This document shows positions 14,162 to 24,742 of a DNA stretch of 64,000 nucleotides, one piece after another (position 1 is the stretch's first letter; every line of letters starts with the position of its first letter). Under the pieces are notes generated by a model. That model ran no database searches. It saw nothing but the letters and a program-made list of their open reading frames with translations, and was not told where the DNA came from. The position numbers were made by a program, and so were the translations under genes. Location: the sequence record AP017925.1; one strand, given 5' to 3'.

Positions 14162-15766
14162 ATGGCTACCGCTTACCAGTATCCGTTCGATCCCAGCGGC
14201 ACTTCGTCTGCCAACCGGATCTTGAACGAGCAGCATGTCATCACCGCTGCAAACTTTCGGGATTACCACTACGTAATCCCGAACTTTGCCCCTTTCTTTG
14301 AGGGCGACTTCGACATCAAAATGCAGTTTCCTGATGGCTCGATTCGTCCTCTGACGCAAGGCGTCGACTTCTACTTCTCGAACCAGTTCTTGGACGCTTC
14401 GCGTGCCTGTGCGAAGCCTGTCTATGGTTCGATCTCGTTCCTTGACACCGATACCGCCGGTATCCTGTCGATCAACTACAACACTGTTGGTGGCGAGTGG
14501 AACATCTCGCCGACAGAAATCTCGCGTATCTTGGCCGAAGAGCTGCGCAACCCCCGTATTACGACCTGGGAACAAATCACGTATTTACCGGAACGTTTCC
14601 CGGTAGTCGATCACGCGTGGGATCTGATCGACATGGTGGGTATGTCTCCGGTTGTGGCTGCCATCGAAGCACTGCGCGACGCGGTTGTGACGAAGAACGG
14701 TGGTAACTTCACCGATCACATCAACAACTACTCGAACCCGCACAACACCACGGCGGCGCAAGTAGGGTTGGGCAATCTGTTCAACTATCCGATTGCTACG
14801 ACGGCTGATGCCCAGGCTGGCACGAGTAACTCGTTCTACATGACACCCGCGCGTGTCAAGGACGAAATCATGGCATTCGCTACGCCGCTGTCGCACTTGA
14901 CGGATTACACCAATCCGCACCAAGTGACAAAGACCCAGGTGGGGCTGAGCAATGTGGCGAACTTCGCAGTTTCGACCACGGCAGAAGCTCAAGCAGGTGC
15001 TGTTGATACGTCTTACATGACGCCGCTGAAGACAGCACAAGCCATCACGCAGCAGGCCGGTTCAGCGCTCGCAGCTCATGTTGCGAACCAGCAGAACCCG
15101 CACAACGTGACGAAAGATCAGGTTGGCTTGTTCAACGTCCAGAACTATCCGATCGCTACGCAACAGCAAGCGATGGCTGGTACGGACAACGCCTCGTACA
15201 TGACGCCGCTGCGCACAGCACAGCTGGTAGCTCAGATCTCTTCAGTGGCGCTACAGAACCACTTGAATGACTTTACCAACCCTCACCAAGTGACGGCCGG
15301 TCAGGTGGGTCTTGGTAATGTGCAGAACTACGGTATCGCTACTCAGGCTGATGCACAAGCCGGCGTGAGCAATACGCTGTACATGACGCCGGGTCGTGTC
15401 GCTGATGCCATCAATGCACTGGCTACGCCGCATGCTCACTTGCTGGATATGAACAATCCGCACCAAGTGACCGCGGCTCAAGTCGGCGCATACACGACTA
15501 CTCAGACGGATACGCTGTTGGGTGGTTACGTGCGGCTGACCGATCAGTGGGTAGCGGGTGAAACCAAAGCTGCCTTCATTGCAGAAGTGCTGCAGGGTAC
15601 GGCGAACAATGCTTCGATGGTTTACGGTTTCACGGAAGCCCAACTGGCCGCCGATCTCGAAACCAATTACTTCGATAACGCTTACGCCACCATTGCTGCA
15701 TTCAATGCATTGGCCCAGCGCGTGACCGACATCGAAACGGCCCTCAACAGCATCACCGTTGTGTAA
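14162..15766 (+). CDS. Tail fibre protein with ~60-aa NPH..QVGLGNV.NY repeats
   Basis: N-terminal YPFDPSG..N.I.NE.H motif typical of phiKZ-like fibres; four full repeats and one partial; RBS AAAGGA. Confidence 0.8.
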   Translation: MATAYQYPFDPSGTSSANRILNEQHVITAANFRDYHYVIPNFAPFFEGDFDIKMQFPDGSIRPLTQGVDFYFSNQFLDASRACAKPVYGSISFLDTDTAGILSINYNTVGGEWNISPTEISRILAEELRNPRITTWEQITYLPERFPVVDHAWDLIDMVGMSPVVAAIEALRDAVVTKNGGNFTDHINNYSNPHNTTAAQVGLGNLFNYPIATTADAQAGTSNSFYMTPARVKDEIMAFATPLSHLTDYTNPHQVTKTQVGLSNVANFAVSTTAEAQAGAVDTSYMTPLKTAQAITQQAGSALAAHVANQQNPHNVTKDQVGLFNVQNYPIATQQQAMAGTDNASYMTPLRTAQLVAQISSVALQNHLNDFTNPHQVTAGQVGLGNVQNYGIATQADAQAGVSNTLYMTPGRVADAINALATPHAHLLDMNNPHQVTAAQVGAYTTTQTDTLLGGYVRLTDQWVAGETKAAFIAEVLQGTANNASMVYGFTEAQLAADLETNYFDNAYATIAAFNALAQRVTDIETALNSITVV

Positions 15767-15818: not shown

Positions 15819-17096
15819 ATGACTATTCCGATCTATCGCTATCCCTTGGATGGCACCGGCACCAGCCCGGATAACCTGGTGGTTGGAGAAGAACACCAGC
15901 TCTCCAACCGAGCAATTCGTTGCGTAGCGCCGACCTACGGTGGCTTCTACGCTGAATCCGCAGTGGTGACGGACTTCAACACTGGCGTACCGCTGGTGCG
16001 CGGTGTTGACTACTACTTTGGTGAGCTGTTCGAGTTCCCCACTGGTCGTTACGGTAAGGAAATCTTCGGCCTGATCGTTATCACCAAGCCGAACGTTGCT
16101 GCCGTTTCGATCAATTACCAAGCACTGGGTGGTGATTACTCCTATTCCATGGACGCAATCATCGCCATGATCGACAACCTGAATCTGGACACGCGTCCGG
16201 TGGAATGGGGTGCGATCATTGGTCGTCCGGCGCTGTTCGATCCGGCAACGCACTGGCACGATGCTGGTGACATCTACGGCTTCGAATACGTAGTGAGCGC
16301 GCTGATCGATCTGCGCAACGCCATCCTGACGGGTGACGTGGCCAGCCACGATGAGATCTATCGCTACATCGATCGCTGGGCAGCTCAGCAGAGCGCGGCC
16401 ATCCAAGCAGTTTCCGATGCACTGCACACGCACATCGTCGACTACACCAATCCGCACCAAACCACGAAGGCACAGGTAGGGTTGGGACTGGTGTCGAACT
16501 TTGCGACAGCGCTGCAAGCTGACATGAATACTGGTACGGCGAACAACCTGTTCGTGACGCCAGATATCGTTGCCGCGTACGTGACTCAGCAGGCAGTGAA
16601 TCCGCTGCTTGCTCACATTGCCGACAAGGGTAACCCGCACCAGACTACCGCAGCACAAGTGGGACTGGGTAATGTCCAGAACTATGGTGTTGCTTCCCAG
16701 CCGGACATGAATGCCGGTACGCGTGACGACGTCTATCTGACGCCGCTGAAGGTCGCGACCTATGTGACAAACGTCGCGGTTAACCCGATGAATGCGCACA
16801 TTGCCAATACCAACAATCCGCATGCCGTGACACAGGCACAAGTTGGGTTGGGTAGTGTTGCGAACTATCCGGTCGCTACTCAGGCTGAAGCGCAAGCTGG
16901 AACGGCTAACAACCGCTACATGACTCCCTGGCTCGTAAACCAAGAAGTCATGCAGATGCTCAACAACGGTGCATTCGACGGTCGCTATATGCGGTATGGC
17001 ACCGCCACTGATGGTTCGACCTGGGTTAGCGCTGGTATCGCCTACGTGTTCGTATCGGGAGCATGGCGACAGTTCTGGCCGCCTGTGTGGCAGTAA
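15819..17096 (+). CDS. Tail fibre protein 2 with three NPH..QVGLG repeats and a short C-terminus
   Basis: N-terminal YPLDGTG..N...E.H motif paralogous to fibre 1; ends VSGAWRQFWPPVWQ. TTG at 15804 is an alternative start. Confidence 0.8.
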   Translation: MTIPIYRYPLDGTGTSPDNLVVGEEHQLSNRAIRCVAPTYGGFYAESAVVTDFNTGVPLVRGVDYYFGELFEFPTGRYGKEIFGLIVITKPNVAAVSINYQALGGDYSYSMDAIIAMIDNLNLDTRPVEWGAIIGRPALFDPATHWHDAGDIYGFEYVVSALIDLRNAILTGDVASHDEIYRYIDRWAAQQSAAIQAVSDALHTHIVDYTNPHQTTKAQVGLGLVSNFATALQADMNTGTANNLFVTPDIVAAYVTQQAVNPLLAHIADKGNPHQTTAAQVGLGNVQNYGVASQPDMNAGTRDDVYLTPLKVATYVTNVAVNPMNAHIANTNNPHAVTQAQVGLGSVANYPVATQAEAQAGTANNRYMTPWLVNQEVMQMLNNGAFDGRYMRYGTATDGSTWVSAGIAYVFVSGAWRQFWPPVWQ

Positions 17097-17104
17097 GAGA
17101 TGTG

Positions 17105-17143
17105 AAAACCACTCCGCCCAAAAGGTGGAGTGGTTTTTATGTC
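17105..17143 (+). terminator. Hairpin terminator after tail fibre 2
   Basis: AAAACCACTCC/GGAGTGGTTTT stem followed by TATGTC. Confidence 0.7.
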
Positions 17144-17171: not shown

Positions 17172-17549
17172 GTGGCCACCACCTCCTCTACAACCACTGA
17201 TGTGCAAGGGTATGACATCAATACTCTCCGCAACACAATTAACAGTGTGCGGGCTCGTATTGCTGCTGGTCAACCCATCAGTGCCAACCAAATCGCTGAC
17301 CTTGCTTGGGTGTACAACACTTGGATTCAGCATACCCACAACTACTACGACTATTACTGGATCGCTTACGGTAATACGTCTCCCTATGGCACCACTGCTG
17401 TATGGAAAACTTCTGGCAACGTTGGTGTAGGGTATTTCTCACCACCTGGGGCTGGACAAACTGTTCAAGCTGCTCATGTGAATGGCTTAGCGGGTCTGGT
17501 CAATGCGATCCGATCCCATACCCACTATTCGCCGGACGGCAGTTACTAA
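17172..17549 (+). CDS. 125-aa protein with two GQ-x19-HTH-x3-D repeats (fibre-tip or precursor-like)
   Basis: GTG start after AAGGA; repeats at aa 33-60 and 95-122; Tyr/Trp-rich. Confidence 0.75.
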   Translation: MATTSSTTTDVQGYDINTLRNTINSVRARIAAGQPISANQIADLAWVYNTWIQHTHNYYDYYWIAYGNTSPYGTTAVWKTSGNVGVGYFSPPGAGQTVQAAHVNGLAGLVNAIRSHTHYSPDGSY

Positions 17550-17632
17550 ACATTCCGTTAGGTAAAAAAGCAAGTGCGTTTTTACCTATCATTCGATTTT
17601 TATAGTAATCCATTTCGAGGACGAATCCACCA

Positions 17633-17830
17633 ATGTCCAATTATCTCTCCACTGTAACAACGGCTGCGGCGCCAGCTAACACTGTGGGGCAAGGCCAAGC
17701 GGTACAACCAGCCACGATGAACCAAATGGCTGCTGTACTGGATTCATTGCTGAGCCACACGCACGTCTTTTATGACAACTACGGCAGCAACTGCAATTGT
17801 AACTGCGCCTGCACCCGAGGATCTCTGTAA
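17633..17830 (+). CDS. 65-aa candidate precursor peptide ending in CNCNCAC
   Basis: RBS GAGGA; third copy of the GQ-x19-HTH-x3-D repeat, then CxCxCxC; stop overlaps the next start (TAATG). Confidence 0.85.
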   Translation: MSNYLSTVTTAAAPANTVGQGQAVQPATMNQMAAVLDSLLSHTHVFYDNYGSNCNCNCACTRGSL

Positions 17831-18717
17831 TGAAAACTGTCTTTATCAAAAGCGGCGGCTACTACGAAACGCCAGGTGTCGCTGTCTCCGGCGCTATCAA
17901 CGACGCCTTCGACTTCAACGTGAGTCAGCATTGCCGTTCGAATGCGCTGTTCATGCTCGACTATGTCAGTCGCGAATACCGCCTCAGCCTTACCGTTGCC
18001 TCTGGTGACATGAAAGATGCGTTCGCGCGTCTCGACATGGATCTGATCACCAAGGCCGCGGAAGAGCATGGCTTCTCTTATGTCGGCCTGGTGGCTGACG
18101 AAAAGGCGATGATGGCTCGCCCGGATGAATTCCTGCGCGACTTGTCCGTCGTGACCGTCTGCAAGGAAACCGGCAAGTTCCTCGATGCCAAGTCCGGCAC
18201 CGCTCTGACCGGCAACAACATCACACCGGTGATCTACTGCGTGAAGATGGCTGACAGCACGTACGCCATGATCCTGAGCCAGATGGCCAACGTGATGCCG
18301 AGCATGGTCGACAATCCGAAGGTGGGTCGTGACGACATGAACGTCATCGTGGTCAATGACGGCGATGCCATGCGTAGTCAGTTCGTGGACGTCAGCTTCC
18401 ACGGCGCTACCAAGCATTTCCGCAACAACGACCTCGTTACTGGTTTCGCAGTGTTTGCTTGGCCGAATGCTCTGATTGAAGTTAATATCTTCAAGGACAC
18501 GCCGCTCGCCGCTGAGTTCAAGAAGAACTTCGAACTGGAAGTCGACAGCAGCTTTGATGCCAAGATCGTCGACGGCAAGGTCGTTATCCAGATGCCGCCT
18601 TCGTGTCGCACTGGCTATCTGTCGATCAAGCTGAAGACCACACCGCTGTACGAAGACGTCTCGTCGCGCGAGATCAAGGAAATGCTTTCGTTCGACTTCA
18701 TCGTGACGGTTGTTTAA
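17830..18717 (+). CDS. Uncharacterised 295-aa protein of the radical SAM cluster
   Basis: Translationally coupled to the peptide gene; no family recognised. Confidence 0.8.
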   Translation: MKTVFIKSGGYYETPGVAVSGAINDAFDFNVSQHCRSNALFMLDYVSREYRLSLTVASGDMKDAFARLDMDLITKAAEEHGFSYVGLVADEKAMMARPDEFLRDLSVVTVCKETGKFLDAKSGTALTGNNITPVIYCVKMADSTYAMILSQMANVMPSMVDNPKVGRDDMNVIVVNDGDAMRSQFVDVSFHGATKHFRNNDLVTGFAVFAWPNALIEVNIFKDTPLAAEFKKNFELEVDSSFDAKIVDGKVVIQMPPSCRTGYLSIKLKTTPLYEDVSSREIKEMLSFDFIVTVV

Positions 18718-18786: not shown

Positions 18787-20400
18787 ATGCAAGAACAAGT
18801 TATCAAAATCCATCGCAAGAAAGAACCCATCGACTTCAAGAAACCCGGGGAGCGTATCAAAACCATCGCCGAGGTCAAGGACATTCTGTTCGCTGAACTG
18901 AAAGTCCTGAACGTGATCCTGACCAACGCCTGCAATCTCTCGTGTAGCTACTGCTTCGAACAGCACAAACAGGACTACGGCAAGTTCACCCAAGAACAAC
19001 TGAAGCAAGTGTATGACTTCCTGCTGAACGCCAACACTCAGCCGCATCGCCACTTCCAGTTCTTTGGTGGTGAGCCGTTGGCGCAGAAGAAGAAGATCCT
19101 CGACTTCTGTCGCGACCACAAGGACGAACTCTCGGCCAACAAGGAGCAGGTGCGTGTGTCGATCGTGACCAACGCGCTGCTCCTGACACCGGAATTCATC
19201 GAGGAATACTGCAGCTACGATTTTACGTCGCTGGTCATTTCTTTGGACACGGATGATGCCGAGTCGAACCGTCGCGAACTGACGCAAGAGAACATCGACT
19301 ACATCTTCGAGATGATCAAGCTGTTGCCTGACTCGATGATGCGCGATGCTCACCACGTCTCGATTCGTTGCACCATCAACGAAGAGAGCGTACCGCACCT
19401 CGATCGCTTCATGGAGCGTCTGTATGCGTCCGGCGTGCGCAATTTCGTGATCCATCCGCTGATCCTCGCTAAGGATCAAGGCGCCATTGAATGGCAGCCG
19501 GGTATGTGGGAGCGGATGTACCATTCACTGCATCAAGCCATGCATCGCTGGGACGACTTCAAGATCACCTGGGCCGAAGGCGTGGGTGTGAAAGGCGAGT
19601 CCAACTGCATGGTCGGTTCGGACATGATTGCGATGGACGCCTCGGGTGACTTCAGCGGTTGCTACTTCCTGACCAACCTGAAAGAAACCTACGGCAACAC
19701 GATGCTCGGCAATCTGTTCCGCGACGAGATCTACATCGATCGTTACGTCGAGTTCCAGCAAGCCTATGCCAAGTCGCTGGAACACGAACAGTGCCAGTCG
19801 TGCCACCTCAAGAACTTCTGCTACCAGTGCCCGGCTGGTAATGCAGCTACTGGTGGTTCGCTGTTCCGTCCGGACTCGATGTGCAAGCGCATTGTGGAAC
19901 TGTTCCTCACTCTGCGTCAGGACTTCAACCGTAAGGCTTTGCTCCAACAGTTCAAGGAGCTGGAAGAAGCTGTTGTCCAGCAAGGTCCGATTGCTCAGTC
20001 TCGTGCAGTGCTGCATTGCATCTACCGCGAGTTCACTGGTGAGATTCAGGACAACGCCATCATTGACGCTTATGAAGAACTGCCGGCACCGCACACGCTG
20101 CTCTTCATGTTCAAGCAAATGCTGGAAGGCGGTTTGACTAGCATTCCGCCGCTCGACGTGTGGGTGTCTGGACTACTGCGCCGCAACCCTCGTCCGGAGG
20201 AAAGCATCGATCCGTACGAGTTCTACCTGTTCTTGTGCAAGCTACGTGGTATCCCGATCGATTTCAAATACACTCCGAATGGTTCTGTTCAAGAGCAGAA
20301 CTACTTTATCACCCTGACTCACTTGCTGATTTTCGATGAAAGTCGTTATCTCAGCAAATACGATCCGGAACACAGCCGGTCTCGTATTCTCGACCTGTAA
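18787..20400 (+). CDS. Radical SAM/SPASM maturase 1 with C-terminal extension
   Basis: CNLSCSYC, FFGGEP, SPASM cysteines CMVG..SGC and CQSCHLKNFCYQCP..C. Confidence 0.93.
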   Translation: MQEQVIKIHRKKEPIDFKKPGERIKTIAEVKDILFAELKVLNVILTNACNLSCSYCFEQHKQDYGKFTQEQLKQVYDFLLNANTQPHRHFQFFGGEPLAQKKKILDFCRDHKDELSANKEQVRVSIVTNALLLTPEFIEEYCSYDFTSLVISLDTDDAESNRRELTQENIDYIFEMIKLLPDSMMRDAHHVSIRCTINEESVPHLDRFMERLYASGVRNFVIHPLILAKDQGAIEWQPGMWERMYHSLHQAMHRWDDFKITWAEGVGVKGESNCMVGSDMIAMDASGDFSGCYFLTNLKETYGNTMLGNLFRDEIYIDRYVEFQQAYAKSLEHEQCQSCHLKNFCYQCPAGNAATGGSLFRPDSMCKRIVELFLTLRQDFNRKALLQQFKELEEAVVQQGPIAQSRAVLHCIYREFTGEIQDNAIIDAYEELPAPHTLLFMFKQMLEGGLTSIPPLDVWVSGLLRRNPRPEESIDPYEFYLFLCKLRGIPIDFKYTPNGSVQEQNYFITLTHLLIFDESRYLSKYDPEHSRSRILDL

Positions 20401-20413
20401 GGTAACTTAACCC

Positions 20414-21496
20414 ATGAACTACGATAACATCCAGGACGTCTCGATCTATGTGGGTCCTGCGTGCAACTTCAACTGCACGTATTGTGATCGCGCCTACGTA
20501 AACAACGTAGGTGTGGATTCTGCTGAATGCGATCCGGCCTTGGTCGACTTCGTAGTTGATGTGGTGCTGCACTCCGAGCGTCCGATGGTTTCCTTCCACG
20601 GTGGGGAACCATTTGTTTACATCAAGACCATGGAGAAGATCATCGAGGCCGTGCTCGAACGCGTACCAGATTTCAAGGAACGCGGCGCGATCTTCTTCAT
20701 CCAGACCAATGGCTCGCTGATTACCCGTCAGCGAGCTTTCTTCGAGAAATACAAAGAGGTGCTCTACGTGAGCATCTCTTACGACTTCAAGTACCAGGGC
20801 GATAACCGCACTGCGTACGACATTGACTCAACCCTGCAACTCTTGAATGATCTGGGGATTGGGACGAACCTGCAATACGTGATTCCGACCTACGACAAGA
20901 ACGCTTGCGATCACGCAGCGTACTCGGAAGTCATGCGGTTGTTCTCCAAGTTTAAGCTGGGGCAACTGAACCTGATCCTGTTGCGTCACATTCGGCAGGA
21001 AGATAAATTCGAAACAGTGATCGCGGATGAGAGCATCGACCTAAAGGGATTCTTCCTCGGCTTCATGCGCTTCGTCCAGTTGCTGTACGTCTCAGGTATC
21101 AATGTCCACATCGACGGTCATGCCAACAAGATCGATAAGAACTATTACAACAACCATAAGCAAATGGTGCTCGCTCCAAATGGCCTGATCGTACCGGAGT
21201 ACCAGTTCATCGAGTATGATGATTACGATTTCGCTATCGGTCGCTGGAAGCCTTACGTGGAGATCTCTCGTGATCAGATGCCGGAGAAGGCCGCCAAGAA
21301 GATTCGCAAAGAGTGCCAGACTTGTCCGATGGCGGACATCTGTGGTTTGCGTTATCACTACGCAATGTTCGATATGGACCCGCCAACTCCGCAACGGTGC
21401 AAGGAGTTCTACTCTCTGAACCTGATCGCGATCAAGCACCTGTACAAACTGAAAGAGCAACCCACCCTTCTCCACCATCTGGGAGTTCAGCAATGA
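20414..21496 (+). CDS. Radical SAM enzyme 2 with partial SPASM domain
   Basis: CNFNCTYC, SFHGGEP, QTNGSL; C-terminal CQTCPMADIC..C. Confidence 0.9.
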   Translation: MNYDNIQDVSIYVGPACNFNCTYCDRAYVNNVGVDSAECDPALVDFVVDVVLHSERPMVSFHGGEPFVYIKTMEKIIEAVLERVPDFKERGAIFFIQTNGSLITRQRAFFEKYKEVLYVSISYDFKYQGDNRTAYDIDSTLQLLNDLGIGTNLQYVIPTYDKNACDHAAYSEVMRLFSKFKLGQLNLILLRHIRQEDKFETVIADESIDLKGFFLGFMRFVQLLYVSGINVHIDGHANKIDKNYYNNHKQMVLAPNGLIVPEYQFIEYDDYDFAIGRWKPYVEISRDQMPEKAAKKIRKECQTCPMADICGLRYHYAMFDMDPPTPQRCKEFYSLNLIAIKHLYKLKEQPTLLHHLGVQQ

Positions 21497-22641
21497 GTCG
21501 CGCTATCACGATCGAGAATCCGAAAGAGCACTTCATCCGTTACGACGGACTGCTCAACGTCCAGTATGACGTGACGTTTTCGATCTTCAAGAAGTACACC
21601 TGTCAAGCCGGGTGCAAGATCTGTTATATCAAGGATGACTTCCTGCCTAACGAGCAGTTCAAGAAGTATGTCCCGATAGCATCACACGTCAACACGCAGA
21701 GCTACGGCGACCGCCTGCTAGAATTCCTGTCATACTTTCAGATGGCAGCAATCATCGACGACCTGTACTTTGTGCGGGAAGAACATCCGGAGCTGTACAA
21801 GTTCTATCAGGAGTATAGCGAGGCCTTCTGGCTGAGTTCCATGACGGACAACGCAGTGTTCCGTCACCTGCCGATTATTGAGGATGACCTTCGTGTCGTC
21901 GGTCTACGGGAGATCTCGCTCTCCGAGGAATTCTTGTATAAAGTCAACCAAACGAAGTTCTTTAACGCACTGGATAAAATTCAGAGGCGCGCTAAGATAT
22001 TGAAAATAAAGGTAATACTGTCGGGTCTCCCTGGCATCGCGATTCGTGGCAACGATTTGATGCTCTGGTGTCAGAACAATCAAGTGCTCCTAGAGAAGCA
22101 ATACGAGCACGGTGTTGAGCCGAATGGCCGCAGCTTCCTGTCTCAGTTGCCGAACACGCGTTACAGCGATCGCAGCCAGGAAACGCACTTCACTGAAGAG
22201 ATCACCTACAGTGAGAATTCTGGTGAGATGCTGTACCCAATTCACTCTGAGTCGATCTTCTTGCAGTACGATGACTTCTACTCGGAGCTGAAGTCTGCCA
22301 CGCGTGAAGACCGCAGTGCGCCGTTTGCCAAGCTGGATGATTTTGTCCAGAGTCCGCAAGGCTTCTTGGCTAAGGTGCTGGAAGGTAAGCTGACGGATTA
22401 CCGCAAGTATGCTTCGTGGATGCAGAACAAAGATCACGACTACTTCCGTTACTTTGACTATGTGGCGAATAACGTGGTAGTCAATCATGACTTCAACTTC
22501 ATCCCGCGTATCGCTCTGCGGCCAGATAGCGTGTACTATCACAAGCTGATGGAACACACGAAGCTGGTGGATACCCAATACGGGCTCGTGGATTCTGCCG
22601 CGAGCAAGGTCGTTCCAATTTACTCTTTCAGAGAACAATGA
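21493..22641 (+). CDS. Divergent radical SAM-like protein 3
   Basis: ATGA overlap with the previous gene; CQAGCKIC (CxxxCxxC) but no GGEP motif and no auxiliary Cys cluster. Confidence 0.7.
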   Translation: MSRAITIENPKEHFIRYDGLLNVQYDVTFSIFKKYTCQAGCKICYIKDDFLPNEQFKKYVPIASHVNTQSYGDRLLEFLSYFQMAAIIDDLYFVREEHPELYKFYQEYSEAFWLSSMTDNAVFRHLPIIEDDLRVVGLREISLSEEFLYKVNQTKFFNALDKIQRRAKILKIKVILSGLPGIAIRGNDLMLWCQNNQVLLEKQYEHGVEPNGRSFLSQLPNTRYSDRSQETHFTEEITYSENSGEMLYPIHSESIFLQYDDFYSELKSATREDRSAPFAKLDDFVQSPQGFLAKVLEGKLTDYRKYASWMQNKDHDYFRYFDYVANNVVVNHDFNFIPRIALRPDSVYYHKLMEHTKLVDTQYGLVDSAASKVVPIYSFREQ

Positions 22642-23897
22642 GCATAAGCACATTCCGAATCGAGAAGTCGGGTGAAGTGTTTGGTTACGACAACACACTG
22701 AACTCGATCCTCGATGCAAACAACCAGCCTGTGGGTCGAGCTTCGTCTCTCCTGGCTCAGGCTCCGTCGTTCGAGAAATCGAATACTCCTACCACCATCA
22801 AGGTACTGCTCGGGCACGCCTGTAACTACAGCTGCAGCTACTGCGTACAGAAGGACATCGGTAATCCGGCTGAACGTCCGAAGAACATCATGACCAAGGA
22901 GTTGATCAAGAAGATGCGCGCGCATCTCGATCTCTCCAACGTCACGCGGATTGAACTGTGGGGCGGCGAGACGCTGCTCTACTGGCCGGATATCGTTGAG
23001 ATCATCTCAGCACTGGATCGGGAAGGCATTACGTGGTACATCCCGACCAACGGTACGATCCTGCGGATGAAGCACGCTGAGTTCTTCCGCCAGATGAAAG
23101 GCGAGATGACCATCGGCATCAGTCACGACGGTCCGGGTCACGTATCGCTGCGTGGTCCGGAGTTCCTGCATCGCAAGATCGATGAGTTGGGTGCGCTGCA
23201 AGACGCCAAGGTACGGTTCAGCTTCAACGCTGTGATCAGTACCACGAACTACGATCTGTTTGCCATCGATGACTACTTCCGCTTCTTCCTGCTCAAGGCA
23301 GACCTCGATCACGTAGGGCTGGGCTTCGAGCTGGGGCGGACGTATGAGACGGGTGCTTGCGCTACCGAGTCGCACGTGATCACACTGGAGCAGATCCCGC
23401 ACTATCGGTCGATTCTGAAAGCGTATCTCAAGCACCATCTCGATGCGTTCAAGAAAGGTCAAGCGCCGGAAGACATCGATGCCGATACTCGACTGTTCAA
23501 CAGCCTGTTCCATTTCAGCAATGGTGTGATTCCGTACGCGAAGTCGCTAGTTCAGCAAAGCCCCATTCGCTATTACAGCAACTGCGGCACTGATGATCCG
23601 AACCTGATCACGCTGGACATGAATGGCGCTATCCGCGTTTGTCAGAACACGGACGAGAGCTACATCTACGGCAACGTTGCTAATATCGGCGCTGCTAAGA
23701 TGCAGAAGGTCGATTACAGCAAGAACGACTTCTGCAAGGACTGCTCGGTTTTGCGGCTGTGCAATCGTAGCTGCCCGATCGAACTGCCATACGAAACCTT
23801 TTTGACCAACCACCATATCGAGAACGCTCACTACAGCGAGATACAACTCTCGGCGTTTGAGTTGTTGTTCGATAGCCCTATCACCAAAGTGAACTGA
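22638..23897 (+). CDS. Radical SAM/SPASM maturase 4
   Basis: CNYSCSYC, LWGGET, PTNGT; SPASM-like CGTD..RVC and CKDCSVLRLCNRSCP; ATGA overlap. Confidence 0.92.
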   Translation: MSISTFRIEKSGEVFGYDNTLNSILDANNQPVGRASSLLAQAPSFEKSNTPTTIKVLLGHACNYSCSYCVQKDIGNPAERPKNIMTKELIKKMRAHLDLSNVTRIELWGGETLLYWPDIVEIISALDREGITWYIPTNGTILRMKHAEFFRQMKGEMTIGISHDGPGHVSLRGPEFLHRKIDELGALQDAKVRFSFNAVISTTNYDLFAIDDYFRFFLLKADLDHVGLGFELGRTYETGACATESHVITLEQIPHYRSILKAYLKHHLDAFKKGQAPEDIDADTRLFNSLFHFSNGVIPYAKSLVQQSPIRYYSNCGTDDPNLITLDMNGAIRVCQNTDESYIYGNVANIGAAKMQKVDYSKNDFCKDCSVLRLCNRSCPIELPYETFLTNHHIENAHYSEIQLSAFELLFDSPITKVN

Positions 23898-23905
23898 GAA
23901 AACTC

Positions 23906-24742
23906 ATGTCCGACATTCTTGACCGTTTTGTCCTGCCCGAAACTGCAGCCCAAGTTACCGAGCTGCGCGCCCAGCTGGACGCGATGAAGAACCATCGTGT
24001 CTTCGGTATGGTGAAAACCATCGACGACCTGCAAACCTTCATGTCGCTCCACGTCTACGCCGTGTGGGACTTCATGACGCTGGCCAAGCGCCTGCAGTGC
24101 GAGTACACCGGCATCAAGTTCCCGTGGGTGCCGCCGCGCCTCCCCAAGGTCGCCCGTCTGATCAACGAGATCATCCTGGCCGAAGAGTCCGACGACAACG
24201 GTGAGGGCGGTACTTGCAGCCACTTCGAACTGTACGCCATGGCCATGCAAGAAATCGGTGACATCGACATGGAGTCGCTCGAAGCATTCGTAACGAACCT
24301 TCGTTACGGTATCCCGCCGGTGGAATCTGCTAACCGTGCACTGATCAAGGCCGATCCGGAGTTCCGTGCGACTGTCACCAACTACATCGGCGATACTACT
24401 GCCGTGGCTCGCACTGGCCTGCCGGAAGAAGTGCTGGCCTACTTCGTCTTTGGTCGTGAAGATTCGATCCCGGCGATGTTCAGCAACCTGCTTGAGCAGA
24501 TGGGTGATCTGGCTGCCAAAGCGACGACCTTCACGTACTACTTGAAGCGCCATATCCAACTCGACGGTGAAGACCACAGTGTCAAAGCTGCTGAGATGCT
24601 GTCGCTCGAACTGGAAGGCAATCCGATTCGCACGCGCACCGCACTGATCGCTGGTATCAATGCCGCCAAGTCCCGCATTGCTTTGTGGGATGCGATTGCT
24701 GCGAAGCTGGAAGCAACTCAAGCAGCGACGGCAACTGCCTAA
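23906..24742 (+). CDS. DUF3050-family heme-oxygenase-like (PqqC/CADD-fold) diiron oxidase
   Basis: Motifs HVYAVWDFM, PWVPP, INEIILAEESD, SHFELY, FGRED, YLKRHIQLDGEDH. Confidence 0.85.
   Translation: MSDILDRFVLPETAAQVTELRAQLDAMKNHRVFGMVKTIDDLQTFMSLHVYAVWDFMTLAKRLQCEYTGIKFPWVPPRLPKVARLINEIILAEESDDNGEGGTCSHFELYAMAMQEIGDIDMESLEAFVTNLRYGIPPVESANRALIKADPEFRATVTNYIGDTTAVARTGLPEEVLAYFVFGREDSIPAMFSNLLEQMGDLAAKATTFTYYLKRHIQLDGEDHSVKAAEMLSLELEGNPIRTRTALIAGINAAKSRIALWDAIAAKLEATQAATATA

Follow-up and report, generated by a model that had tools for sequence, protein, structure and literature searches.

A Cysteine-Ladder Peptide as the Probable Substrate of a Mobile Radical SAM Cassette in Huge Phages

An Unannotated Gene in the Genome of Phage RP12

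The stretch of DNA analysed here (hereafter, the window) comprises 64,000 nucleotides (nt) of sequence record AP017925.1 and belongs to the Ralstonia solanacearum jumbo phage RP12 (279,845 bp), with which it is 100% identical; all positions are given in window coordinates, which equal the record coordinates minus 65,255. On the plus strand, an ATG-initiated open reading frame (ORF) at 17633..17830, which encodes a peptide of 65 amino acids (aa), occupies the gap between ORF074 and ORF075; it has no annotation in three public records (RP12 GenBank, RP12 RefSeq and RP31). We propose, with a probability of roughly 0.55, that this peptide serves as the cysteine-ladder substrate within a mobile cassette of seven genes, which is located beside the tail-fibre genes of huge phages and includes four enzymes of the radical S-adenosylmethionine (rSAM) type.

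The peptide consists of a variable N-terminus (residues 1-28), a predicted amphipathic helix (about residues 29-41), the tripeptide His-Thr-His (HTH; residues 42-44, nt 17756-17764), the segment FYDNY (residues 46-50, nt 17768-17782), the N-C-N-C-N-C-A-C ladder (residues 53-60, nt 17789-17812) and the pair R62-G63 (nt 17816-17821), followed by the stop codon TAA (nt 17828-17830). The translation and the location of the four Cys residues (54, 56, 58 and 60; nt 17792-17812) are those given in an earlier reading of this DNA from its letters alone (hereafter, the original prediction), and so is the overlap of the stop codon with the next start, the last A of TAA being the A of the ATG of ORF075 (17830-18717). 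A Shine-Dalgarno-like site, GAGGA, is located 11 nt 5' of the peptide start codon. The six reading frames of the window contain 397 ORFs with a length of 60 aa or more, of which this is the only one whose product has a ladder of at least four alternating Cys. Given the conservation of the homologues described below, their fixed synteny and the coupled stop and start codons, it is practically certain that the ORF is a real, translated gene, as the original prediction assumed.

Conservation of the Peptide Family

A tBLASTn search of 50,697 GenBank phage records with the peptide and the ORF074 protein as queries retrieved RP12 and RP31 only. The peptide family becomes visible only in IMG/VR and among metagenome proteins, where the first scan gave seven viral loci and a profile search with a threshold of E <= 0.01 detected 378 or more non-redundant homologues. 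With few exceptions, these are 65-70 aa long (about 67), without a Pfam domain or a name, and some are encoded on contigs of 200-360 kb. For the analysis of conservation, the RP12 peptide was aligned with its 120 best homologues (121 sequences). Variability is confined to the first 28 or so residues, and the C-terminal 37 hardly change: this near-invariant half contains the amphipathic helix, HTH, the segment (I/V)FYDDY, the ladder C-N-C-N-C-x-C-x-C and a terminal x-R-G-x-x. Residues L36, H42, H44, D48, Y50, R62, G63 and every ladder Cys are invariant in this alignment; M32, L33, L39, T43, D49 and N55 are conserved in at least 97% of the sequences, and F46 is replaced by V or I in approximately 13% of the homologues. 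Two Asn residues within the ladder are conserved at 89% and 98%, and no Cys occurs outside the ladder in any of the 121 peptides.

All 120 listed homologues combine HxHx3D with the Cys ladder, and both elements, whose conservation next to rSAM genes the original prediction had proposed as a check, are indeed retained in the syntenic homologues. The Cys-rich C-terminal core that it described is real as a ladder, but the four Cys of RP12 are atypical of the family: 112 of the 120 homologues have five ladder Cys and the other 8 have six, and the closest relative of the RP12 peptide, in L003 (loci are designated by L and a number), has seven. These differences between relatives indicate that the number of ladder repeats drifts, which fits an encoding DNA repeat of the form (AAY TGY)n. 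The YYD motif of the neighbouring protein, which had been considered a second potential modification site, turned out to be specific to RP12; what ORF074 conserves instead is HxHxxxD, twice. No match to the peptide was found in NCBIfam and Pfam, including SCIFF-type peptides, which have six Cys in about 45 residues, and sequence searches of PDB chains with the peptide profile, ORF075 and ORF078 likewise gave no match.

The Seven-Gene Cassette

All loci with a peptide homologue, approximately 20 distinct contigs that include phage contigs of 160-379 kb, were searched with hidden Markov models (HMMs) for the seven RP12 proteins. The gene order ORF074, peptide, ORF075, ORF076, ORF077, ORF078, ORF079 was found in every one of these contigs, apart from L018/L019, where ORF075 precedes the peptide and lies between it and ORF074; a few loci have two copies of ORF075, and an extra ORF076-like gene is present in L033. 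In L003, approximately 1.2 kb without a convincing plus-strand ORF separate the peptide from ORF075 (L003:5810-7029), which could represent an insertion, an intron or a gene on the minus strand. The similarity of the 64-kb RP12 window to eight tested loci is restricted to the cassette, with the addition of a DUF3050 gene in two of them, so that the distribution of the cassette is that of a mobile module. Pairwise identity averages 21% for ORF075, the fastest-evolving member, 30% for ORF074, 32% for ORF078, about 45% for both ORF076 and ORF077, 48% for the peptide and 49% for ORF079. The cassette was also found in at least one contig of a set with one genome for each of 185,579 bacterial and archaeal species, namely NCGL01000045.1, a 25.6-kb scaffold from a metagenome-assembled genome (MAG) labelled 'Bdellovibrio sp.'; this scaffold (L034), which carries the whole cassette, is probably phage DNA binned with a bacterial MAG. 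Searches of Pfam and NCBIfam with the cassette proteins and their conserved neighbours gave no match to PqqD or the RiPP recognition element (RRE; RiPP, ribosomally synthesized and post-translationally modified peptide), to peptidases or to transporters, and PADLOC detected no defence system among the cassette proteins. A viperin-type defence system was considered and rejected, the similarity to viperins in PADLOC being only generic and limited to the N-terminal rSAM part.

The first gene of the cassette, ORF074 (17172..17549, plus strand), is located directly 5' of the peptide gene in nearly all loci and encodes a protein of 125 aa with two helix-HxHxxxD modules (H54/H56/D60 and H116/H118/D122). 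Clustered at 50% identity, the family comprises 247 representatives. The number of HxHxxx[DE] motifs is exactly two in 141 of the best 150 relatives, all four His are invariant across 106 sequences, and one relative, P0236, has three HxHxxxD modules in a single chain. Long relatives contain inserts or C-terminal extensions that are Gly-rich, jelly-roll-like or consist of a Hint domain, and such additions are of the kind typical of receptor-binding proteins; a 555-aa ORF074-like protein in L014 ends in a Hint domain that is preceded by F-T-D-D-Y. The AlphaFold2 model of ORF074 (mean predicted local distance difference test score, pLDDT, 90.9) comprises three helices and a hairpin, and a Foldseek search of the PDB with this model produced no meaningful relative.

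ORF075 (17830..18717, plus strand), which is translationally coupled to the peptide gene by the overlapping codons, encodes a hypervariable protein of 295 aa (about 300 in the family) and is present in every cassette. Its AlphaFold2 model (pLDDT 88.6) consists of an alpha/beta N-terminal part followed by Ig-like sandwiches. The alignment of the family contains no conserved residues that look catalytic, Foldseek searches of the PDB and BFVD with the model returned only the protein itself and generic partial matches to Ig-like domains, and sequence searches of Pfam, NCBIfam and PADLOC gave no match.

The Radical SAM Enzymes

The CX3CX2C motif is invariant in all four enzyme families of the cassette across 8 cassettes, which places the four in the radical SAM superfamily, and Cys residues of SPASM or twitch-like type are retained in three of them (ORF076, ORF077 and ORF079); the Pfam model PF04055 matches the same three enzymes and does not match ORF078. 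ORF076 (18787..20400, plus strand; 537 aa) is an rSAM/SPASM protein with C49/C53/C56, eight further invariant Cys and a Pfam Radical_SAM match at 1e-19. ORF077 (20414..21496, plus strand; 360 aa) has C17/C21/C24 and four invariant C-terminal Cys that are consistent with a single predicted auxiliary cluster. ORF078 (21493..22641, plus strand; 382 aa) is annotated as hypothetical and has no match in Pfam and NCBIfam; it is nevertheless present in every cassette that is complete to that point, with C37/C41/C44 invariant in 8 of 8 and no auxiliary Cys, and from these sequence features it appears to be a cryptic fourth radical SAM-like enzyme. ORF079 (22638..23897, plus strand; 419 aa), again an rSAM/SPASM protein, has C62/C66/C69 and six invariant SPASM Cys.

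The best NCBIfam matches of these enzymes are peptide maturases, namely PapB, the nif11-type, QhpD, SCIFF, CcpM, YhhB, anSME and DynA families, among others. Judged from sequence, the cassette would work like an rSAM/SPASM peptide-maturation system and yet it falls outside all of the families against which it was compared (PapB, SCIFF, triceptide, anSME, QhpD and HxsB). The score of ORF076 against the PapB model NF047865 is 125 bits, compared with a curated cut-off of 340 bits, and those of ORF077 and ORF079 are 57.6 and 47.7; for the SCIFF maturase model TIGR03974 (cut-off 425 bits), ORF076 scores 69.9. The triceptide families XyeB (TIGR04496), YhhB (NF041707) and GrrM/OscB (TIGR04261), with cut-offs of 310-450 bits, are matched with best scores of 43-44 bits by ORF076 and ORF077, XyeB at 26.7. 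ORF079 scores 49.4 bits against anSME TIGR03942 (cut-off 349 bits), ORF076 scores 73.8 bits against QhpD TIGR03906 (cut-off 453 bits), in its N-terminal part only, and the score for HxsB TIGR03978 (cut-off 370 bits) is 60.9, the motif of the peptide being HxHxxxD and not H-x-S repeats.

Comparison with the individual systems gives a mixed picture. The PapB/PapA pairs of the freyrasin-type ranthipeptides resemble the cassette in that an rSAM/SPASM enzyme is encoded next to a small Cys-rich peptide, and ORF076 aligns to the whole PapB profile (2-327 of 330) and ORF077 to its N-terminal part; furthermore, the acceptor residues of PapA are Asp, and in the RP12-type ladder Asn and Asp alternate with Cys. 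In contrast to PapA, however, the RP12 peptide has no C-x3-D/E repeats but a C-x-C-x-C ladder, and the cassette has four rSAM enzymes and two non-enzymatic partners, is phage-borne and is linked to fibre genes. In the NxxcB/NxxcA system, a beta-thioether connects Cys to the C-beta of Asn in an N-x-x-C pattern; N-C-N-C contains overlapping N-x-x-C, with the ladder Asn 89-98% conserved, but the RP12 ladder is repetitive and contiguous, and no NxxcB family model was among the listed matches. QhpD is a precedent for an rSAM enzyme that cross-links a small protein subunit: this rSAM/SPASM enzyme introduces Cys-Asp/Glu thioethers into QhpC, which is kept within a larger assembly, and the pair offers the best functional analogy for a putative matured structural subunit, although no dehydrogenase genes are found among the cassette neighbours and there is no Trp quinone. 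The anSME family is the second-best NCBIfam match of ORF079, and C-A-C-T-R of the peptide resembles C-x-(P/A)-x-R; however, no sulfatase is encoded at the cassette, and the ladders of the type found in phage JWF (see below) lack the Arg and hence the motif. Similarly, the likeness to triceptide rSAMs (XyeB, YhhB, GrrM/OscB), whose products carry a C-C bond from an aromatic ring to the C-beta at residue i+2, consists of the weak enzyme matches and of conserved triplets in the peptide (Y/F47-D-D49, Y50-x-T/S52 and H42-T-H44), but F-Y-D is not universal in the peptide family and YYD of the neighbour is not conserved. Finally, HxH motifs form metal sites in trimeric phage fibres and spikes, such as T4 gp37, T4 gp12, P2 gpV and R-pyocin fibres; here, too, an invariant HxH follows an amphipathic helix, the genes lie beside fibre genes and three modules are available per ORF074-peptide pair, but the fibres with known HxH sites require no rSAM enzyme, and sequence and fold searches detected no similarity of the peptide or ORF074 to any solved fibre.

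Ladder-Ended Tail Fibres in Other Phages

The ORF079-type enzyme also occurs on its own in many smaller phages. The HMM of ORF079 matches, over the full length, gp030 of the Achromobacter siphophage JWF (3e-42), which was originally annotated as anSME, and ORF045 of the Ralstonia phage RSP15 (3e-38); both genes are located within fibre clusters. In JWF, gp028 (L016:3685-5136) encodes a T4 gp36-like fibre protein in which the ladder N-C-N-C-D-C-N-C-N-C-S-C runs straight into F-P-A-G-T, which makes the last ladder Cys residue 1 of a Hint domain; given this position, self-cleavage by Hint would leave the ladder as a free C-terminus. The same junction of ladder and Hint (C|FPAGT) is present in L036-L044 and L052, and the side tail fibre of RSP15 has the C-terminus N-C-Q-C-G-N.

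The ORF079-type subfamily is represented by 459 loci in IMG/VR and by at least 2,944 non-redundant proteins with generic names ('SPASM domain-containing protein'), some of them from Burkholderia genomes. Co-occurrence with the ladder was scored for the best 80 of the 459 loci, a ladder being counted when it stands at the end of the protein or directly before Hint. An ORF with such a ladder is encoded on the same strand, 0.7-5 kb upstream of the rSAM gene, in 60 of these 80 loci; 16 of the 20 loci that lack it have less than 2.5 kb of upstream sequence, so that 60 of 64 informative loci carry a ladder, against a background of 1 in 397 ORFs in the RP12 window. The ladder-bearing proteins that were tested match tail-fibre PHROGs with E values down to 1e-104, and structural fibre proteins of up to 686 aa that end in a ladder are encoded next to the ORF079-type enzyme. 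Thus, the ladder co-occurs with ORF079-type enzymes across unrelated phages, as the free distal end of a fibre. A protein of approximately 285 aa that is encoded after the ladder-tipped fibre in JWF- and RSP15-type clusters was considered as a candidate homologue of ORF075 and rejected (hhalign probability 0.5%).

The Tail-Fibre Neighbourhood

In RP12 and in L003, two fibre genes are located directly 5' of the cassette. In the window, these are ORF072 (14162..15766, plus strand), annotated as a virion structural protein, a tail-fibre-like member of the YomR family that matches phrog_2163 at E 3e-145 along with many other tail-fibre PHROGs, and ORF073 (15819..17096, plus strand), a second tail-fibre-like virion structural protein (phrog_2163, E 7e-145), for whose homologues 131 jumbo-phage records give the annotation tail fibre, short tail fibre or virion structural protein. 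Among genes that flank the cassette in other lineages, 8 of 10 sampled match tail-fibre or virion PHROGs; the cassette usually adjoins tail-fibre genes. A terminator-like hairpin with a 20-bp stem and a T-rich tail, recognized by consensus match only, separates the fibre genes from the cassette (17099..17143, plus strand), and a stable A/U-rich RNA hairpin is predicted in the spacer between ORF074 and the peptide gene (17557..17590, plus strand; minimum free energy -18.6 kcal/mol, z = -3.2 against shuffled sequences). The two hairpins may give ORF074 and the peptide different expression levels.

Downstream of ORF079, RP12 encodes ORF080 (23906..24742, plus strand), a 278-aa DUF3050 protein (Pfam, 2e-68) that was named MgoB-like in the RP12 genome paper (PMC5468394) and that appears to be an accessory which recurs but is optional. 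DUF3050 companions are found at L003:13118-14732 (two copies), L030:8733-9536 (minus strand) and L032:12681-13508, where the gene is inserted between ORF076 and ORF077; most other cassettes are without one.

The related phage FLC1-1B has the same neighbourhood without the cassette. It encodes instead a larger homologue of ORF073, gp74 (L015:14336-16015), followed by the 187-aa gp75; from its sequence, the C-terminus of gp74 reads like an S74-type (endosialidase) intramolecular chaperone, a part that RP12 ORF073 lacks. This suggests that alternative solutions for fibre-tip maturation share the ORF073-cassette locus. In the related Ralstonia jumbo phage RSF1 (L115, record positions 72327-84754), homologous fibre genes are followed, at the same position, by an unrelated cluster of four rSAM genes, a cupin gene, two 2-oxoglutarate-Fe(II) oxygenase genes, two dihydrofolate reductase genes and homing nucleases; as an equivalent of the cassette this cluster was rejected, no relative of the peptide, ORF074 or the ladder being found in it. 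The position that follows the fibre genes has the look of a hot spot at which enzymes that modify proteins are encoded.

The rSAM genes of RP12 are listed in the genome paper with no further account (PMC5468394). In the Aeromonas phage 332-Vera (Chimalliviridae), eight rSAM genes in a structural and tail-fibre cluster have been termed highly unusual (PMC12390700); protein searches for relatives of the RP12 enzymes found none in Aeromonas phages, and 332-Vera may represent another, independent case of fibre-linked rSAM genes. The literature searched (open-access papers and bioRxiv) contained no description of rSAM enzymes that act on Cys ladders of tail fibres.

Predicted Function of the Cassette

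Given how strictly the operon is conserved, the peptide is the likeliest substrate for the cassette rSAM enzymes; that it is their substrate, the first of two readings offered in the original prediction, is quite probable in view of this operon and of the co-occurrence with rSAM genes. Assignment of the ladder to a particular enzyme is somewhat less secure, the pairing with ORF079 being reasonably likely from the distribution of the two across phages. ORF079 would abstract hydrogen atoms within the C-N-C-N-C ladder, giving rise to covalent cross-links, most plausibly thioethers between the Cys sulfur and an Asn or Asp carbon, as in PapB, QhpD and NxxcB. The Cys-Asn/Asp thioether is the most economical guess given the likeness of ORF076 to PapB, the QhpD precedent and the overlapping N-x-x-C in N-C-N-C; by analogy with these systems, we regard thioether chemistry as a tentative assignment, at somewhat less than even odds. 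Other kinds of chemistry are possible from the conserved motifs, namely cyclophanes at Y/F47-D-D49, Y50-x-T52 or H-T-H, formylglycine at C-A-C-T-R, and a metal site to which ORF074 would contribute two HxHxxxD modules and the peptide a third. The thioether, cyclophane, formylglycine and metal-site options are not mutually exclusive.

The occurrence of ORF076, ORF077 and ORF078 is restricted to loci that also have the HxHxxxD/FYDDY modules, ORF074 and ORF075. These three enzymes would probably act on the segment that is common to the peptide and ORF074, or help to build a metal site, a proposal that rests on the invariant His and Asp of this segment. The matured, rigid peptide, ORF074 with its variable display inserts and the hypervariable ORF075 would then become part of the adsorption apparatus. 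Given that the module is tied to fibre genes and that an (N-C)n ladder ends fibre proteins, a matured virion protein is favoured over a secreted RiPP, and the product is more likely a cross-linked component of the fibre tip than a free antibiotic; for a virion or fibre role of the peptide itself, predicted from this gene context, the chances are about even.

In the broadest form of this proposal, rSAM/SPASM enzymes of phages would covalently cross-link the extreme distal tip of receptor-binding fibres, an unrecognised class of virion modification that we put forward with some reserve, as falling short of an even bet. The cross-linked tip would be the (N-C)n ladder: in JWF-type systems, with thousands of loci, it would be the fibre's own free C-terminus, which in some cases a Hint domain uncovers by self-cleavage, and in the version of the huge phages a separate cap peptide of 67 aa that joins ORF074 and ORF075 and is the target of three additional rSAM enzymes.

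Several observations weigh against the reading of the peptide as a cross-linked fibre component. In all loci the peptide is encoded by a small ORF of its own and in none as part of a fibre protein; what the RP12-type and JWF-type systems have in common is limited to the enzyme and the ladder; and the last two intervening positions of the ladder are not strictly Asn. Every NCBIfam score of the cassette enzymes is far under the curated cut-off and, with no family cut-off reached, the enzyme chemistry can be judged only from distant similarity. The neighbourhood with fibre genes is correlative, 2 of the 10 sampled flanking genes have no PHROG match and the upstream flank of the cassette in L011 contains replication genes. 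None of ORF68-76 is listed in the virion mass spectrometry of RP31 (PMC5468394, Table S3); however, this was based on gel bands and trypsin with a database that did not include the peptide ORF, and the peptide, which has no Lys and a single Arg (R62), is invisible to trypsin, so that the dataset is uninformative on its presence.

Alternative Explanations

The alternative that is closest to the original prediction is a classical RiPP, in which the N-terminal part would be a leader and the rSAM enzymes would build a polycyclic product, with thioethers, cyclophanes or both, that is freed at lysis or stays in the cell, for instance as an antimicrobial or as a host-takeover or anti-defence effector. 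This explanation accounts for a small ORF that directly precedes, and is coupled to, a set of four rSAM/SPASM-type genes, whose best, though distant, matches are RiPP maturases such as PapB, SCIFF, CcpM and YhhB, and for the conserved aromatic-x-Asp and Cys motifs that resemble known cross-link sites. Nevertheless, we consider it unlikely given that no cassette contains a protease, an exporter, an immunity gene or an RRE/PqqD domain, that the cassette regularly neighbours tail-fibre genes and that structural fibre proteins as long as 686 aa terminate in the same ladder beside a homologous enzyme. The proposed leader-plus-core architecture itself fits poorly, the putative leader being the variable part (28 residues) and the core near-invariant (37 residues), with neither an RRE/PqqD domain nor a peptidase or exporter.

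Alternatively, the peptide might not be a covalent substrate but a metal or Fe-S binder, whose HxH, Asp and five Cys would coordinate iron, zinc or a cluster, either as a structural metal site of the fibre, comparable to the HxH sites for iron and zinc in T4 gp37, T4 gp12 and P2 gpV, or as an electron carrier or scaffold for the four rSAM enzymes. Residues of ligand type are 100% conserved and Cys is confined to the ladder, the alternating spacing would, on structural reasoning, place all Cys on one face of a beta-strand, and three HxHxxxD modules are present per ORF074-peptide pair, as they are in the single chain of P0236. However, a metal binder leaves unexplained the tight tie between the ladder and a SPASM rSAM enzyme, which holds even where this is the sole rSAM; the conserved Asn of the ladder (89% and 98%) are not metal ligands, and CxCxCxCxC is, to our knowledge, not known as a ferredoxin-type motif. 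Metal binding and cross-linking are compatible with each other; metal binding in place of cross-linking appears rather improbable.

A cofactor precursor of the PqqA/PqqE or MftA/MftC kind, from which Y-D-D-Y would be excised to yield a small redox molecule, would be in line with a small peptide beside SPASM rSAMs, with the invariant Tyr and acidic residues and with the DUF3050/MgoB-like protein of some cassettes; this scenario is highly improbable, given that a PqqD- or MftB-like chaperone, a peptidase and a downstream oxidoreductase are all missing from the cassette and that the ladder and its presence on fibre proteins would remain unexplained. A spurious, untranslated ORF, to which the lack of annotation in three public records might point, is already refuted by the comparative sequence data, that is, by 378 non-redundant homologues that are conserved as protein while their DNA diverges, by the constant place in a conserved operon and by the stop codon coupled to the next start.

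Implications

If the interpretation of the peptide as the ladder substrate of a fibre-linked cassette is correct, a missing gene would be added to the annotations of RP12 and RP31, and three unnamed families (the peptide, ORF074 and ORF075) would be defined along with the cryptic fourth rSAM, ORF078. For enzymology, the contiguous C-N-C-N-C ladder would represent a new type of substrate, available in one-enzyme (JWF-type) and four-enzyme systems. The unexplained rSAM genes in the fibre clusters of jumbo phages, such as the eight of 332-Vera (PMC12390700), would have a reason. RiPP chemistry would, in these phages, be applied to a structural protein of the virion, and cross-links at the fibre tip would affect how stable virions are and how they bind receptors, with consequences for host range and for efforts to engineer phages and tailocins. 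More generally, RiPP-type radical chemistry would be widespread in phages and tied to host recognition rather than to antibiotic production.

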